A stretch of 64,000 nucleotides of DNA. It comes from Tetramitus jugosus (taxonomy: Eukaryota > Protista > Heterolobosea). The notes beneath the pieces were generated by a model, which saw only the letters and a program-made list of their open reading frames with translations, searched no databases and was not told the DNA's origin. Shown in pieces: positions 55,642 through 63,701 of this stretch; position 1 is the first letter of the stretch; the number at the start of each line of letters is the position of its first letter. The stretch covers positions 124,001 to 188,000 of the forward strand of contig OW569355.1 in the NCBI GenBank assembly GCA_937625935.1. The letters run 5' to 3'. The translations under genes were made by a program, and so were the position numbers.

Positions 55642-57453
55642 CTAGTATTGTGAGTCTCTGAATTGATCACACCAGGAAATGACATCCTTCGAATTGATGG
55701 CTACTTCTGGTCCTTGTGCTTTCTTCTTGTACCAGATCAGCAATCTAGGAACCACCAATTGTGAACCCACGCTCTCTCCATAGTTTTCTTCCCATTGTGT
55801 AACTTTCACTTTTCCATAATACTGAACTACAAGAGCATACTCTGGCACCTTTGGAGGAATGTCAGTCTGCATTTTGATCACTCTAAAATATTCTCGCTCG
55901 TTGATTCTGGGTGGTGTGAGTGTCGAGAACAGATTGTCCTGGTATTGTGGGTAGAGGAGAGCTATCTTGTCCTCACCTTTAAATTGTTTCTGAGGTTGTA
56001 TCTTTGCCTCTGTTGATAAAAAAGCAGTGAGTAAGTGTCATATACTATACTACCAAAATGAATGATACGAACGTTCATACTGGTCCTCAAAGCTTTTATC
56101 CACAGAGAGGCACGCATACAACTTTGCTTTGCTTCCAAAGATTTCGTCGCTGTTGGGTATTGTCGTTGGACTCAAGTACACTCTGTTCGATAAAACTAAC
56201 CACAGTAATTGATTAATCTACGGAAAAACGATGCAGATGATAAGTTACTAACCAACTTGTCAAAGAGATGATATGAAGTGATGGCACATATTTGTACATA
56301 CAACATCGACTGGTAGTGCACTGTTTTCCTGGAGATAACCACCAGCTAATAGTTTTTTCAGACCTTTGAGTGATGGAATGTCATTTAACATCTGACTGGA
56401 AAGTTTACCGCCGTAATCTGACCATCGCATCTGCTTATCATGATAGATACAGGGGAATGGGCTATAATAGCCGCTTGCTTCCTTTTTCAATAGTGACAAC
56501 ATGTATCGCAGAAGGTGTTCCTCATTCTTGAGATAATGTCTCAGCAATGAAAATCCAAACCCAGACGTTCTTGCACGGTTCAAATTCGCCATGGCATCCA
56601 CGAATCCAGGTCTATATCCCAAAGTAACCTTTCTTCCAGATATCAAACACTTGGAGTTGCATGTTTGAATCTCTGAATACACCAACTGAACCATTCTAGA
56701 CAGCAGTCCACCACGTACAATCTCTTCAACCAGTACCCAGAAACGAGAGTAACTTTCGAAGAGCCGAATGAGAGCACTCTGGAGCAACATGGACAAGCCA
56801 AAGTCATTTCTGTGCTGACTCATACGAGTTGCCCTCCTCAAAGGTGAATTGAATGCGTCAGCTTCTGCGAATTCGTTCTTCTTTGGTTCTTCCTTCAGTG
56901 CCTTCCTCTGCTGTTTCGTCTGCTTCTTCTGCTTTCCCTTGACATCGTGTAGTCTTGACGGTTGAAACACTTGTTCATGCACAGAGCTATCGTTTATTGT
57001 CTTGAGATAGTTTGCTCCTCCCAGATCCACCTTCACATACACAACAATCTCGCTCTTCTTGTCAATGAATCTCCCGCCAAAAAAATTGTCTGACGCGTTA
57101 GGAAATAATCGTAGAGGATTCAAGTTCAAAATGATATGAACAAATTGTTCCTCTGTTTGGTTCTCGGTAAATGTCAACAGATCTGGGTGGCAATTGTTGT
57201 CACTGCTTTCAGTCTGTTCATGACAAGATTGAGTTTTGGACTTCATCTGGGATTGTAGTTCCTCGTGTGTCAGGACAAGACAACCGCATAGTCCACCTGC
57301 AGTCAACAACAATTGTTTGGCTTCATTTCGTAAGCTTTCAATCATAGATTGAAGAGTCAATGGAGTGATATTTGGTTCATGGATGAGAAATGGCTGATTT
57401 GCATCACCTAGAACTTGTTCAATGCAAATTCGACTCTTGGTTTCTGTCGTCAT
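55642..57453 (-). CDS. Divergent PARP6/PARP8-like protein; 3 exons (introns 56218-56301 and 56010-56072)
   Basis: GT-AG introns join three frames. YYSPFP, LLWLVLSNR and VVPRLLIWY recall PARP6/8 segments; the catalytic FHGS motif is not visible. Confidence 0.55.
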
Positions 57454-57547
57454 CTGGTTTTTTGTTGTTTTCTGCAATTTTCTCGATCTGCTGCAAAAAA
57501 ACAATTGCTTTCATTTTCAGAATGTATTCCGTGAAAACCGATTTTCC

Positions 57548-59263
57548 ATGGTATACTACCTGAATGACGTGACAAAGGACGGACAATTGGTTGTTCGGCA
57601 ACTGACTAGAAATGAGACACTGTCGAGTATTGCAGTTGGTTTGGGACACACCAATGTCACTCTCCAAGTGCCTCCACCACTTGGTAATGACAGTAATGGC
57701 TCAAGTTCAATGAACATGGAACAATGGATTGTAGCAGAAGAAGAACAAGTGATCCATACAGAGTACTTTGATTTGAGAGTCAAGTCAACGTACAAGACTG
57801 ATTTGTACTATGAGAGAAAAATGCAGTTTTACACACTGGATTTCTCTCGAGTACGACTGTCAAACTCCAGTTTTCAATTTGTGCAATTGAATACAAACAG
57901 CACAAATCAATATGTAGTGTTGCCCAATACGAGAGTGTGTGAGGATTTCACTGAAATTCAAACAACAAACTATTACTTTCAGATAGCATTCTCAGTCTCT
58001 ACCATTATCGTTGCAGGCATTCATGTATTGCACGGCATATGGTTGTTTATCGCTCAGATTGTACTTTGCAAGCACTCACTAGTAAAAAGTCGTTTGCTGT
58101 CTGAGATTCCTAGTGGATTGGCTGTGAATGCATCTGATGTGGTTGTATTGATTCTGTTCAGTGTGGACGTGTTCTGGATATACAAGTATGGAGTCAGAAG
58201 CAGTTCACTACTGATTATTAGTGGATACGTTAGGTCGTGGCTCATCTATGTTGCCTGTGTGTCCTATGTGTTGAATTGCCTCCGATACCTGCTGCTGTTA
58301 AACTTTTATAGATTGGTGAGGCAAGGAAACACAGTGTCAAAGTACCACAAGATTTTGACCTCCAAACTAATGTTCATTGTGCTACTCGTGATGTTTGCAT
58401 CGATCATGTTGGTCATTTGTGTCATCACGTTAAGTGTCATTGGAATCAAGGCTTTGAAAGTACAAACCTATTTAGTCACTGTTCTTGCCATTGTGTCCTG
58501 TGTGGGCGCTATTGCCTCAGGACTCATCTCTATCGTTTTCGAAATCATGGTGAATTTTAAGTCCATCAAAAAGTATGGATTGATTTCATATTTTAGGAGA
58601 GACCCACTGTACATTAGATTACAAATGCTAGGTATCGTATTTCTGATTGTAGTGGGTATTGCTTATGGAGGTCTGTTCGGCTTCTTACAACCAAACTATC
58701 GCAGTATTCGTCTAACATATGGAAGAGTGTTTGGTTATGTGATCGTATACTTGTTGTTTGGATTGATTCTCAGAATTATCATGGCTGGTGCATTCATATG
58801 GCCATTGCAACTGGTTCAACTGTTCTCTGGGGATCAGAAACAGTATGAGTTCAAATTCGAAGAACTAATGTCTGATCCAGAGTGCTATGATCTCATGTAT
58901 GAGTATTGCAGTCGAGAGTTTTCTCTGGAGAACCTACTGTTCTGGAAGTACGCACAAGATCTCAAAGGTCTACCCATTGACCACCAAACGGTGGTCAAAA
59001 TAGCAGACAAGTACATGAAACCATTAAGTCCATTGCAAATCAATTTGCCAAGTAAGACGGTAAGAAACTTTTTGCAATTGATTACAGATATGGAAGCAAA
59101 CCAGAGAACAGAGATTGAGTTTGACTTAATGTACAACGTCGTTCGTTCAGATCTGTTGATGAATTTGGATGATACTCTGAAACGATTTTACTCAACTACA
59201 GCTTTCCAGGAGTGGGAACACAAACATGCAACTTCTAAGCAATTGATTGAAACTGTGTTTTAA
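57548..59263 (+). CDS. Multi-pass (about 7TM) membrane protein with C-terminal RGS domain
   Basis: About 7 hydrophobic segments, DPLYIR, YCSREFSLENLLFW, SPLQINLP, NLDDTLKRF. Start may be 57422 or 57548. Confidence 0.88.
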   Translation: MVYYLNDVTKDGQLVVRQLTRNETLSSIAVGLGHTNVTLQVPPPLGNDSNGSSSMNMEQWIVAEEEQVIHTEYFDLRVKSTYKTDLYYERKMQFYTLDFSRVRLSNSSFQFVQLNTNSTNQYVVLPNTRVCEDFTEIQTTNYYFQIAFSVSTIIVAGIHVLHGIWLFIAQIVLCKHSLVKSRLLSEIPSGLAVNASDVVVLILFSVDVFWIYKYGVRSSSLLIISGYVRSWLIYVACVSYVLNCLRYLLLLNFYRLVRQGNTVSKYHKILTSKLMFIVLLVMFASIMLVICVITLSVIGIKALKVQTYLVTVLAIVSCVGAIASGLISIVFEIMVNFKSIKKYGLISYFRRDPLYIRLQMLGIVFLIVVGIAYGGLFGFLQPNYRSIRLTYGRVFGYVIVYLLFGLILRIIMAGAFIWPLQLVQLFSGDQKQYEFKFEELMSDPECYDLMYEYCSREFSLENLLFWKYAQDLKGLPIDHQTVVKIADKYMKPLSPLQINLPSKTVRNFLQLITDMEANQRTEIEFDLMYNVVRSDLLMNLDDTLKRFYSTTAFQEWEHKHATSKQLIETVF

Positions 59264-59374
59264 GGATGTAGTTCGTTGGACCTCAACGTATAAATAGAAC
59301 TCTACCTATAAATTTTCCAGACTGCCCAAAAAAACAGGTGCACGACACCGAATCACAAACACAAGCTTACGATC

Positions 59375-59545
59375 ATGGTTGCCACATCTCATCAATGGTT
59401 CTGTTCCGGCTGTGGTTCCGTCTCAGCCAAGAGTATTATAATGAATACTGCCTCATGGTTCTGCCCAGGATGCGGTCAAGTACTGGTTGATTCAACAAGC
59501 AATCAAAACAGGCACAAAAAATTTCCTTTGCAATTTGCACGGTAA
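59375..59545 (+). CDS. Small zinc-ribbon ORF (56 aa, two WFCxGCG knuckles), possibly a 5' gene fragment
   Basis: MVATSHQWFCSGCGSVSAKSIIMNTASWFCPGCGQVLVDS...FAR*; below the ORF-track size cutoff. Confidence 0.5.
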   Translation: MVATSHQWFCSGCGSVSAKSIIMNTASWFCPGCGQVLVDSTSNQNRHKKFPLQFAR

Positions 59546-59812
59546 GCCTGACTTGCAAACGGCCAAACAGTGTGAGTACAAATTGTCCATATAAGACCTT
59601 ATTGTTGATAGATTATTGACTATCGAAGATCGAAAATCCCGACACGTCAATACCAAATTCAACACATCTTCTACACCAAGGAACGAACCAACTAGATACA
59701 CAAATAAATCAATATGTATATCGGTTATTCTTACTTTTCTTTTGACTCCAAACTTTACCAATTGTTGGTGTTGGTTATGTCTTCTTTTGGCGCCTTTTCC
59801 TTGTTTTCCCAT
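59492..59812 (-). pseudogene. F-box-like N-terminal gene stub
   Basis: ITDIHIDLFVYLVGSFLGVEDVLNLVLTCRDF fits the F-box pattern; the ORF ends with no substrate-binding domain. Confidence 0.55.
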
Positions 59813-59963
59813 TTGTTCATTGATTTTTTTCATCAAAAAAAACTTGCAAAAAACAGAAAACAAACACTCTGAAGGACATCGTGAATGCGAGTGACCTGAT
59901 GAGTGTGAGTTTTCTGACGTTTGTCAAATTCTGTCCTATTGATACCATTAGAGAGGTGTTGAA

Positions 59964-60599
59964 TTGTCCGATAACTTGAGTATTCAGATCTCATTGATGA
60001 CACTTGCTCTTCAAACATATCCTGATAACACTGACTATGTCAACAAGATTATTAATAACATTGCTAGTCAATTGAATAGCACTGCACTTGCTTCAGATGA
60101 AATTGTAGAGATGTTGAAGCGATTGTTGTTGGTGCCACTCGAGTCATACAACAATGTGCTAACAGTTTTGAAGTTGGAGAAGTATGGTGATATTATTCAT
60201 TCTCTTGGATATGAACAGAGAAAGTTTATTGCACTGAGCATTGTGAGATGCGCACTTGACAATGGACACAAGATTTCAACATTTGAACAAGTGAACAAAC
60301 TGTTTGATTTGATTCGTCCACTGTTGAAGGATGAGGAAGACCAAACAACATTCTCACCTTCTGACGACTCACCAATAGCTGCAACATTGCTCGAAGATTT
60401 CGAAGAAGAACAGAACTTGATTGCCAGATTGGTTCATTTGTTTGATAATAGCGATACTGATCAATTGTTTAAAGTTTTGGCCGCAGCCAGAAAGCACTTT
60501 GGTCAGGGTGGTGTCAAGAGAATTCAATACACATTGGTACCGCTTGTATTCTCCTACTTGAAACTTGCTCAGAGAATCTACAATGCACACTGCAAATAG
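59964..60599 (+). pseudogene. VPS35: Internal fragment of retromer subunit VPS35
   Basis: LALQTYPDNTDYVNKI, LLVPLESY, DFEEEQNLIARLVHL, ARKHFGQGGVKRIQYTLVPLVF; lacks the N- and C-terminal portions. Confidence 0.85.
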
Positions 60600-60958
60600 A
60601 CACCTCTTGTCGACTCTCCATCTTTTTTGATTGATTTGGTTGTTGTTGTTGTTGTTGTTGATGTTCGTTGTGCGACTTGTGTTTTTCGTTGTTGTTGTTG
60701 TCGTGTCAGAGAGAAAGTTTTTCGTTGTCTTTCGTTTGGTTCAAGATTGGATAGATAGGTGGATATATTATAAAAAAATACAATAAATGTTGTATCAGTT
60801 TCCTCTAAGCTGCGGAATTGGTGCAGTTGTAAAAATTTCCGTTGAGACTGTCTTTACAACGACAACGGCCATCTACCTCGGTTTAAAAAGCGCTGTCTTT
60901 TTCGCTGTTTGATTCAACTCACACAACAAATACACCACACAACAAATACAAAAACATT

Positions 60959-61975
60959 ATGCCACGAGGCGTGCCTAAGGACGGCAAGAGAAAGAGAAAG
61001 AGAGAGACTGTCAAAAAGAATGAATACTCATCACATTACGTGGTCAAGGTCGGTCTGAAGTCTCTGTTGTTGCATCATCCAACTCTGTTACCAATCATAC
61101 AGACTCAAGCTCTGGAGATTACAAGGATTGCTCTTCGACTCACAAGATTTATAAACATATTCGTTTTGAGGCACTTGGAGTCTGACTATCAAATCCCTTT
61201 ATTAGATCAAGTGTTTCTTCAAAGATTAGGTTCTGTGTTGTTTGGACGCAATTCAAAACCAAGAGACAATAACTTAAGTCTCATCAACGAGTCTGTCAAC
61301 ATGGACGATGTAGTAGTCAAACTCAGAAAGATTTATCAGAGTTTTGCCACGTCCATCAATTATGTTGCCAGGTCTCTCAATGTCAACATCTCCAACATGC
61401 TCAAGTTCACATTGGAACCAAGACTGAGGAAGTATCTGAGGGTCAGAATGAATCAACTACACAGTGACTCATCTATTCCAAAGTCAGAACAAAGAAGGGT
61501 TGTTGAATACATTATCAGAAGGTTGACATTTAGCACTCCTGTCCACGATTTTATCAAATTGCCTCCAAAAGAGTTGATAGAGACGATTCCTGTGTTGATC
61601 CGAGAGGTTCGAACACTTGTTGATGCTAAAACTGATGAAGTAATTGATGAATCATTTGTGAAGAACAACACCAATAACATGCTGAAGTTTTACTGGCATG
61701 TTCAACAATTTCTGATCAACAATGATATGAAATCGTTTGCACTACTTCCTTTGTCTCATTTCAAGTGCAGGTGTATGGAGATTGGCACAAAGGAATTAGT
61801 TGATATGCTTAAACAGAAGAAACAAGGAAGACAAAAGAAGGGCGAGGAGTCAACTGAATTGAAGTGTAATCTCATATCATATCCAGGAGGTTGCCGATAT
61901 ACGTCTTCCTTGGAAACCACGAAAGGGAACAAATTCAATCGAAAACGGTACGGGATAATATTGGCATCCAAATAG
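60959..61975 (+). mobile_element. Fanzor1-like (TnpB/Cas12-related) protein, truncated before the RuvC domain
   Basis: VVKVGLKSLL...LLPII...ITRIALRLTRFINIFVLRHLE...IPLLDQVF; NISNMLKFTLEPRLRKYLR; KSFALLPLSHFKCRCMEIGTKELVDML match the Fanzor1 N-terminal pattern. No TDG or GxDPG downstream in any frame. Confidence 0.72.
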
Positions 61976-62088
61976 CCACACAAAAATTGTTGTTCAAATT
62001 CTCCAGCACCCACAATAGGAACCACAGAGAGCCACCAAGAGAGAGAGAACACAGAATCACAAACACAACACGAGTAATCAAGGCAACA

Positions 62089-62268
62089 ATGGTCAAACAA
62101 TTGATTACTCGTGTTCAACATCCAAGTCACCTGACCCAAGGTTCTCGACTCATCAAGCACTATGTACTGAGTGCATTGTTATCCTTTCTACTACTCTTTC
62201 TGGCTCACTACTTGTGGACACTGATTGTTGTTCGGGTGCTACAACTGAGACAGCAACTACAACAATAA
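62089..62268 (+). CDS. Small single-TM ORF (59 aa) or 5' gene stub
   Basis: MVKQLITR...VLSALLSFLLLFLAHYLWTLIVV...; preceded by a CA-rich leader like those of real genes here. Confidence 0.3.
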   Translation: MVKQLITRVQHPSHLTQGSRLIKHYVLSALLSFLLLFLAHYLWTLIVVRVLQLRQQLQQ

Positions 62269-62378
62269 TAAATTGCAATGAGAGGGGAAACTCTGTCGTC
62301 TCTGTCCTTCACTTTTGATCTATTTACAATTTTTGTTTTATTGATTCATTGCTTAACAACAATCATCAATCAGATCTG

Positions 62379-63701
62379 TTAAAAGTAATCCACTTTGAGA
62401 TCACTGTTTGTTGCCAATAGTTTCTTAATTGTGAGCTTACTCTGACCATCCAAGTCATTCTCACCCAGATTAATCAATTGCAAGTGTGGTAATTGACACG
62501 ATCTCATCAGTATCAACTCTTGAACAATGTACACCGCAGTTTCACCTTGTATACGATTGCACCACAAGTCCAAAACTTGCAATTGACTCAAGTGCTGTAC
62601 ACTGGATGTGATGAGAGATGCAATGGGGAATGTAATGTGATGACCCGACAGTGTCAAATGAGTCAACTGTTGACTGTTGAGCAGAATGGGTGATATGCAC
62701 TGTGACCATGCATCAGAATCAATAAAGTGATGATCCTTGTCATCATCCACCAACCATAGACTACTACTACTACTACTACTGTTGTTGTTGTTATTATTAT
62801 TATTGTTGTTATTATTGTTATTATTATTATTGTAATTGTTACTTGTTGTTGCGACTCGATGACCAATGCCTCTCATGGTTAAGCGTGTCATGATTCGATT
62901 GCCAACAAATGATTGAAAGAATATGTGACATCCAATGTTGCCATTCAATTGAACACTGATATTTCGATATTGATTCTCTTCCAACAATTGTTGTTGCTGT
63001 TGCTGTGATGATGATAATGTACTATGAGTAAAAGTACGATTAGTAGTAGTAGTGGTAATGATTTGAACTTGACATGCATCTCTCAATTCATTCAACAATT
63101 GAACCAATGGTTTATTCCAATTGTATTGAATGAGATGTGAGTACTTGTTGTTGGTATCAAATGTGTATGATGATGAACATGAGGATGATATGGTTGATGA
63201 TGATGGTGGTGACAGAGGAGAATTCTTTTGTTGTCCATTGCCAACAAATTGTGGGTGTTGTTGTTGTTGTTGTGGATGGTGAGAAGAATATGGTGGTGGT
63301 GGTGGAGGTTGTGGTTGTTGATGTTGGAGATTGGATTTATCATATTGATTGTAACTTGTTGTTTGTTGTTGTAGTTGCTGAGAGGGCAGTGCTGATTGAT
63401 GATGATGATAATAATTAGATGGAGAATTGGATAATTGTTGTGATGATGACGACGATGAGGATAACATGATTGGATAATACACTTGTGGCTCTTGTTGTTG
63501 TTGACAATAATAATTGTTCACATTCGATGATGATGATGATGACTGTGCCATGAGTGGAGGAGCACTGGCATCAATGTCATCCAATCGATTGAATGATGAA
63601 GAAGAACTGTTGTTGTTATCATTATTGTTGTTGTTGTTGTTGCTTGGAGAGAGTAATCTTCTCTTGGAACCCAATTTCTTACCCAGACCAAACAATGTCA
63701 T
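62379..63701 (-). CDS. RNI-like LRR protein with low-complexity N-terminus
   Basis: LTHLTLSGHHI, LQVLDLWCNRI, LQLINLGENDL; poly-N/S/Q tracts. Confidence 0.8.
   Translation of the reverse strand: MTLFGLGKKLGSKRRLLSPSNNNNNNNDNNNSSSSSFNRLDDIDASAPPLMAQSSSSSSNVNNYYCQQQQEPQVYYPIMLSSSSSSSQQLSNSPSNYYHHHQSALPSQQLQQQTTSYNQYDKSNLQHQQPQPPPPPPYSSHHPQQQQQHPQFVGNGQQKNSPLSPPSSSTISSSCSSSYTFDTNNKYSHLIQYNWNKPLVQLLNELRDACQVQIITTTTTNRTFTHSTLSSSQQQQQQLLEENQYRNISVQLNGNIGCHIFFQSFVGNRIMTRLTMRGIGHRVATTSNNYNNNNNNNNNNNNNNNNNSSSSSSSLWLVDDDKDHHFIDSDAWSQCISPILLNSQQLTHLTLSGHHITFPIASLITSSVQHLSQLQVLDLWCNRIQGETAVYIVQELILMRSCQLPHLQLINLGENDLDGQSKLTIKKLLATNSDLKVDYF

Follow-up and report, generated by a model that had tools for sequence, protein, structure and literature searches.

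A 3'-truncated Fanzor1-like gene in a young, multi-copy TTAA element of a protist genome

Introduction

Non-autonomous Pack-type DNA transposons carry captured fragments of host genes and no transposase. Abortive gap repair, known from the P element, Ac/Ds and mariner, yields internally deleted copies with breakpoints at the element ends and short filler.

Fanzor1 proteins have already been reported in protists (Saito et al. 2023, PMC10432273). SpuFz1 of Spizellomyces punctatus (PDB 8gkh) has the catalytic residues D383, E541 and D606, uses the TAM CATA and cleaves 16-21 nt into its target, and GtFz1 of Guillardia theta, a protist Fanzor1, has a measured TAM of 5'-TTAAN (PMC10432273). NlovFz2 belongs to Naegleria lovaniensis, a member of the Heterolobosea; Fanzor2 proteins are compact and are found in IS607-type elements (PMC10432273). 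Here we describe a Fanzor1-like open reading frame (ORF) in a protist genome, the element that contains it, its intact relatives and the junction at which it is truncated.

Sequence data and methods

The window, by which we mean the whole stretch of 64,000 nt that was analysed, corresponds to C12:124001-188000 of a genome of 26.35 Mb in 56 contigs, and this genome was searched with the ORF in six frames. An alignment and profile, A2, was made from nine members, namely five genomic copies and four metagenomic homologues (59-75% identity). Residues of SpuFz1 are numbered after removal of the 394-residue MBP tag of 8gkh. Contigs of four runs were compared over window positions 58300-63300; X3 is organism A and X4 is a groundwater metagenome.

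The truncated gene and its intact relatives

The ORF was listed mechanically at 60959-61975 on the forward strand; it starts with ATG and encodes 338 aa. An initial annotation had read it as the N-terminal WED/REC half of a Fanzor1 nuclease, stop-free and cut before RuvC, and had quoted a series of motifs. Listing and translation confirmed both the open frame and every motif, which are KRKRKR, VKVGLKSLL, ITRIALRLTRFINIFVLRHLE..IPLLDQVF and FALLPLSHFK..IGTKEL. Searches of Pfam and of PDB sequences with the window ORF alone gave only noise and nothing significant, the PF07282 zinc-finger/target nucleic-acid binding domain is absent from it (Pfam), and an ESM Atlas feature search with residues 1-305 returned no usable match. 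For the first ~130 aa, no similarity outside the family was detectable in Pfam, PDB sequences or the ESM Atlas.

The six-frame search yielded 39 matches to the ORF in the genome, most of them in open frames of ~660 aa and most with either 96-99% or ~83% identity over residues 1-305/309. Full-length paralog ORFs comprise 637-643 aa, and 19 loci align end to end with a 654-aa homologue with zero stops. Intact copies, whose existence elsewhere in the genome had been anticipated, are thus present as 19 uninterrupted frames with RuvC motifs. The paralogs contain LVGIDPG, MIDEFMTSQKCHHC (IDEF…CxxC) and THNRDINAAKN and match Pfam PF07282 (Cas12f1-like TNB) at 7e-10, above the curated cut-off, while a single paralog sequence matches SpuFz1 (PDB 8gkh) at 1.9e-13. 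Profile comparison with SpuFz1, which the annotation had proposed as a check, aligned A2 with 8gkh at E 8.3e-21 over profile positions 130-618, colinear from REC to the C-terminus (SpuFz1 residues ~129-633).

A2 shows no variation at D373, E536 and D587, which align to the catalytic D383, E541 and D606 of SpuFz1, or at four cysteines of the zinc finger. Within the part that the window ORF retains, the FALLPLSHFK block aligns to FSAIPLRR of SpuFz1. SINYVARSL aligns to SpuFz1 SINYLTVSM, the REC segment with the TAM-contacting residues Q129, Q130 and N133. SpuFz1 was the sole significant solved relative in single-sequence and profile searches of the PDB, in which no TnpB or Cas12 chain appeared at E<=0.1; the NCBIfam TnpB models scored weakly and below cut-off (IS607_TnpB, E 0.003). 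An AlphaFold2 model of a full-length paralog, made with a 9-sequence alignment, had a pLDDT of 44.6, too poor for a fold search, and a word search for Fanzor homologues found five relatives, metagenomic in every case. Judged by these alignments, the family is probably of Fanzor1 type, with the REC region to the C-terminus colinear with SpuFz1 and the first ~130 aa unmatched. The reading of the window ORF as a WED/REC half cut before RuvC is accordingly upheld for residues ~130-305, which lie inside the SpuFz1 profile alignment; the WED/REC attribution did not extend to the first 130 aa, VKVGLKSLL included, which match no known Fanzor.

Between subfamilies, dN/dS is 0.16 in the N-terminal half, which therefore encodes a functional domain in the intact copies. 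The subfamilies are mosaics, that is, sequence has been exchanged among copies.

We put at roughly 85% the probability that the ORF consists of Fanzor1 codons 1-305, followed by 33 read-through codons, in a 3'-truncated element copy. Paralog identity and the profile alignment place codons 1-305, with the basic N-terminus and the WED/REC half, at 60959-61873 on the forward strand, and translation and junction comparison assign 33 non-Fanzor codons and the stop to 61875-61975 on the same strand. Similarity had been thought to end near 61855; comparison with full-length paralogs moves the break, where homology to intact copies ends, to 61874/61875, which reads AATCTCA/TATCATATCC (the slash marks the breakpoint). 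The split RuvC with its D-E-D triad is not in the window ORF, which stops before RuvC-I. Neither a TDG motif nor GIDPG nor the rest of RuvC occurs in the window in any frame, and a search with the RuvC half of a paralog was without a match in that part of contig C12, in agreement with the annotation.

Over the 915 nt from the start of the ORF there are 0 differences from the intact 637-aa copies L003 and L005 (contigs C8 and C38). The gene was therefore truncated very recently, and the fact that its frame is open is uninformative on selection. Two explanations had been offered for that frame, recent truncation and retention as a nuclease-less protein, and only the first is borne out. The second would have the truncated gene kept as a WED/REC protein that acts as a regulator or as a dominant-negative binder of the omegaRNA or the target motif. 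It could draw on the open frame and the intact upstream region, but we regard it as scarcely credible: with zero private substitutions in those 915 nt selection is unreadable, the 33-aa tail comes from reading on into non-coding DNA, among the runs compared no RNA contig crosses the 61874/61875 junction, and an exact-protein look-up found the truncated sequence in none of the public assemblies.

Element structure

The truncated gene lies in a type A Fanzor element. Type A elements are young, multi-copy and transposase-less; they end in inverted repeats and duplicate a TTAA target. The annotation had looked to flank alignment to define the element ends, and this gave the TTAA duplication and a 12-nt inverted repeat. 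Comparison of sister loci places the left end at TTAA/GGATGTAGTTCGTTGG… and the right end at …CGAACTACATCC/TTAA, and TTAA flanks both sides of all complete sister copies. The complete copy on contig C8 spans C8:610507-614178 (3,672 bp), and the right element end is only ~90 nt past the Fanzor stop codon. A second backbone, type B, has other ends (…GACCGCCACC/TTAA), is compact at ~2.68 kb and holds the Fanzor gene only; the metagenomic homologues L044 and L047 likewise bear type B ends. The repeat is a 12-nt perfect inverse in type A and 10+ nt in type B, and the elements are characterised by the end sequences GGATGTAGTTCG or GGTGGCGGTC.

In the window, blastn against sister loci delimits a 3'-truncated type A element at 59264-61874 on the forward strand, 2,611 of ~3,672 bp (the left 71%), and when whole elements were compared with the entire window by blastn, 59258-61874 alone matched. 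The left copy of the TTAA target duplication occupies 59260-59263, as indicated by sister flanks and by X4 joints that skip from 59264. It is followed by the left type A terminal inverted repeat at 59264-59279 (+; GGATGTAGTTCG..), of which 12 nt are a perfect inverse of the right end. Next come a weak F-box-like cargo ORF at 59492-59863 on the reverse strand, common to sister elements (Pfam E 0.04 only), and a captured internal Vps35 fragment of 636 nt at 59964-60599 (+; PF03635, 1e-44; profile positions ~323-530 of 726). The genuine Vps35 gene of the host maps to C22:81999-84489; over 20 fragments of it adjoin Fanzor copies. The Fanzor upstream region at 60795-60958 (+) is common to types A and B, type B homology beginning here, and is presumed to hold the promoter and 5' UTR.

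The part lost amounts to ~1,060 bp and includes codons 306-637 (TDG, RuvC I-III and the zinc finger), a conserved 3' block and the right repeat, so that the window copy keeps the left end alone. Since these parts are gone, the copy is predicted to be a dead fragment that can neither cut DNA nor mobilise as a two-ended element.

Three further observations concern the elements. A 56-aa ORF at 59375-59545, in the left cargo region common to sister copies, has two WFCxGCG zinc-knuckle-like motifs. Contigs of a soil metatranscriptome (X11) cover 59262-60786 at a depth of 200-2300, the Fanzor ORF having a depth of 0-5, and one of them begins at 59262 and includes the repeat, which suggests that the cargo side of the element is transcribed; the X11 signal is partly host Vps35 mRNA, as loose contig ends run on into the real gene. 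Outside the window, ~150 kb downstream of the truncated copy, C12:334404-337176 holds a type B Fanzor copy that is degenerate, its frame being broken by several stops.

Insertion site, junction and origin of the truncation

On the left, the element adjoins a host gene at 57422-59263 (+) whose 613-aa product has a membrane-spanning region and a C-terminal RGS domain (PF00615, 9e-09). The TAA stop codon of this gene (59261-59263) falls inside the TTAA target site, and the insertion leaves its coding sequence whole and replaces its 3' UTR. The nearest database homologue, also an RGS protein, is 51% identical and therefore provides no orthologous empty site. On the right is a convergent host gene at 62379-63701 (-), a listed ORF of low complexity with a leucine-rich C-terminus. 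Its reading as leucine-rich repeats is by eye only, Pfam giving nothing significant, and a look-up found no exact record of its protein.

A near-identical, multi-copy repeat is prone to collapse, and the junction might thus be an assembly artefact at a locus that in reality holds a full element. We find this extremely improbable: an X3 contig crosses the break (61848-61967) with zero differences, the 46 nt past the break are unique in the genome, and the right flank runs on into the host gene. The X3 contig in particular makes an artefact at the junction unlikely, though X3 may be the source sample. The X3 record also holds a second version of the left flank over 59002-59227, with 14 differences in 226 nt and ~2/3 of the depth of the perfect version, a sign that the culture is mixed or carries a divergent haplotype.

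Element-free alleles were found in X4, which matches the window at 98-99.8% identity in the flanks. Two X4 contigs join 59263 to 61921 and to 61935; both contigs are short, their shorter side comprising 27 nt, and the joints allow for additional letters between the two sides. The skip begins exactly where the repeat has its first base, as it should in an element-free allele. The 22 loci that a metagenome scan with a 19-mer of the left flank brought up had no further homology and were all chance matches.

Between the broken element and the point at which the empty allele resumes lies a 46-nt stretch, 61875-61920, with no second copy in the genome or in the retrieved loci. Either these 46 nt are filler DNA or the original flank began with them; in the latter case the X4 alleles bear deletions from the TTAA. 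Under both readings the flank-side break is at the element/TTAA boundary and no TTAA-adjacent bases of the right flank were lost. Two truncated sister copies have TTAA at the junction or 4 nt from it. The copy on C45 (L012 2296) keeps the left end, breaks at codon ~266 and reads ..CCTTTG-TTAA-flank, and that on C38 (L024 6590) keeps the right end and reads flank-TTAA-AATA-internal sequence from the equivalent of 59549.

The element inserted at the TTAA that shares its TAA with the stop of the RGS gene. On the reading that we favour, a break of the kind made by a TTAA-specific transposase would have arisen at the element/TTAA boundary. Incomplete copying or resection and then end-joining would have left the truncated copy. 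Spontaneous deletion or ectopic recombination, unrelated to transposition, might instead have removed the right part of a complete insertion, and copies on C16, C24, C23 and C2 do have internal deletions at varied positions. A random event, however, usually takes flank as well or spares part of the right end, while in the window copy and in the C45 and C38 sisters the flank-side breakpoint is the element/TTAA boundary, and we consider this origin unlikely.

The truncation could also be a scar of restorative homing, in which the element was excised, Fanzor with its omegaRNA cleaved the resealed empty site, and a sister copy was the template from which part of the element was copied back. Homing of this kind is established in bacteria, for TnpB (review PMC13565253), and the retention of one end with an internal break at the other, the identity to intact copies expected of recent templated copying, and the mosaic subfamilies, with their exchange of sequence between copies, would all suit it. 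SpuFz1, however, cuts 16-21 nt into its target, and the loss to be expected from such a cut is absent here, as the empty alleles resume at 61921 right after the TTAA or, on the other reading, the flank is whole from 61875. The two truncated sisters break at TTAA itself, where a transposase cuts, and ordinary gap repair after cut-and-paste excision would yield the same products without Fanzor. A homing scar is therefore quite improbable. Junctions at TTAA fit transposase breaks better than Fanzor cuts, and we infer that the evidence favours a transposase-made break with incomplete repair.

A separate observation concerns the place of the break within the gene. Type B copies (L015, L018 and L020) differ from type A by 10-28% from L003 ~1672 to ~2411 and are 97-100% identical from there on. 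This recombination boundary, at L003 2411-2433 (window ~61869-61891), lies within ~20 nt of the breakpoint (L003 2416). The proximity could be due to chance (~1%), or the REC-RuvC linker could be a hotspot of recombination or stalling.

Candidate transposases

No transposase was found inside type A or type B elements. The TTAA duplication and terminal inverted repeats are features of TTAA-duplicating DNA transposons (piggyBac/Kolobok). The ends of piggyBac elements read CCC..GGG, in contrast to GG..CC here. The genome contains ten piggyBac-like PF13843 loci, none of them with matches to the type A or B repeats nearby. Several PF13843 frames are free of stops and 582-968 aa long (C34:198515, C18:150044-151294, C30:266267-267517, C18:38735, C39:393561 and others) and are candidate TTAA-specific transposases.

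Candidate omegaRNA and TAM

A 3' block of ~220 nt (L003 3254-3475 and its equivalents in L015 and L020) is 99-100% identical from one subfamily to another; immediately upstream of it the same subfamilies diverge by ~20%, and downstream their repeats differ. It comprises the last ~160 nt of the ORF and ~60 nt downstream and, by analogy with described systems, is a candidate omegaRNA scaffold. A short stem past the stop codon has compensatory changes, noted by eye, in L003, L044 and L047 (CCCGA/TCGGG, CCCAA/TTGGG and CTAAA/TTTAG). For the 3' region of intact copies, the other RNA tests were negative: RNAalifold showed weak covariation, with a positive covariation term, the RNAfold z-score of -1.06 is not significant and an Rfam search gave no match. 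The block ends at the hairpin CATAAT-T6/7-ATTATG, and its synonymous sites are more conserved also in comparison with the metagenomic L044.

Given SpuFz1 and GtFz1, the latter with its TTAAN TAM, the protein of the intact copies would be expected to bind an omegaRNA encoded at the 3' end, with DNA just beyond the right TTAA as guide, and to recognise a TTAA-containing motif. TT precedes TTAA at 5/5 genomic type A left ends (window 59258-59263; L021, L022, L025 and L031) and at one in the soil run X8; the right flanks of seven type A copies and the left flanks of six type B copies are without this bias. This TT is host DNA, since the X4 empty allele has it, and TT-TTAA may reflect an orientation-specific preference for a target or TAM (TTTTAA) tied to the type A WED/REC variant.

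A broader proposal holds that the family is active now and uses Fanzor for restorative homing in a eukaryote, the truncated copies being aborted copy-back products and a TTTTAA TAM co-evolving with the variable WED/REC half. We give it a low probability.

Host affiliation

The DDI1 protein encoded in the window has a 98%-identical Logan protein, and its best named matches (39-58%) are from Naegleria fowleri, N. lovaniensis and Willaertia magna. In a quick maximum-likelihood tree, limited to one gene and partial sampling, it forms a clade with Naegleria/Willaertia and Heterolobosea sp. BB2 (SH-aLRT 82-98). The host is probably a heterolobosean-like protist that belongs to neither Naegleria nor Willaertia. 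A Fanzor1 in a heterolobosean host had been called notable, which holds only mildly: because Fanzor1 in protists and the TTAAN TAM of GtFz1 have already been reported (PMC10432273), neither the host nor the TTAA association is a categorical novelty.

Conclusions and comparison with known systems

The ORF is itself dead; its value is that it leads to a Fanzor1 family that is multi-copy and very young and has 19 intact genes. The family sits in compact, transposase-less TTAA elements of a poorly sampled protist lineage, with insertion-free alleles in environmental relatives. It thus offers a natural system for asking which transposase moves Fanzor-only elements and whether a eukaryotic Fanzor aids the persistence of its element, which only bacterial TnpB has so far been shown to do. 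To this the window copy adds an insertion that is dated and polymorphic, and its junction speaks for breaks of the transposase type over Fanzor cuts. By its sequence, the family appears to be a fresh Fanzor1 family of an already known type.

The full-length paralogs, at 637 aa, are nearly equal in length to SpuFz1. They are colinear with it from REC residue ~129, conserve the catalytic D/E/D and the zinc-finger cysteines, and their gene occupies the right end of a terminal-repeat element, with only ~90 nt between its stop and the element end. Identity, however, is low, the first ~130 aa of the family cannot be aligned, and the TAM of SpuFz1 is CATA whereas the family element has a TTAA target duplication; the window copy, moreover, is without everything from residue 306 on. 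The TAM of GtFz1, which was compared by description only, matches the TTAA expected for the family. NlovFz2 comes from the Heterolobosea, the lineage to which DDI1 gives a weak affinity here, but in contrast to the compact Fanzor2 proteins of IS607-type elements the family has a long Fanzor1-colinear REC and TTAA elements with terminal repeats. The elements resemble Pack-type transposons in being transposase-less, in their captured host-gene fragments and in having truncated copies that break at element ends, and differ from them in their cargo, which includes a gene for an RNA-guided nuclease that is apparently functional and under purifying selection.
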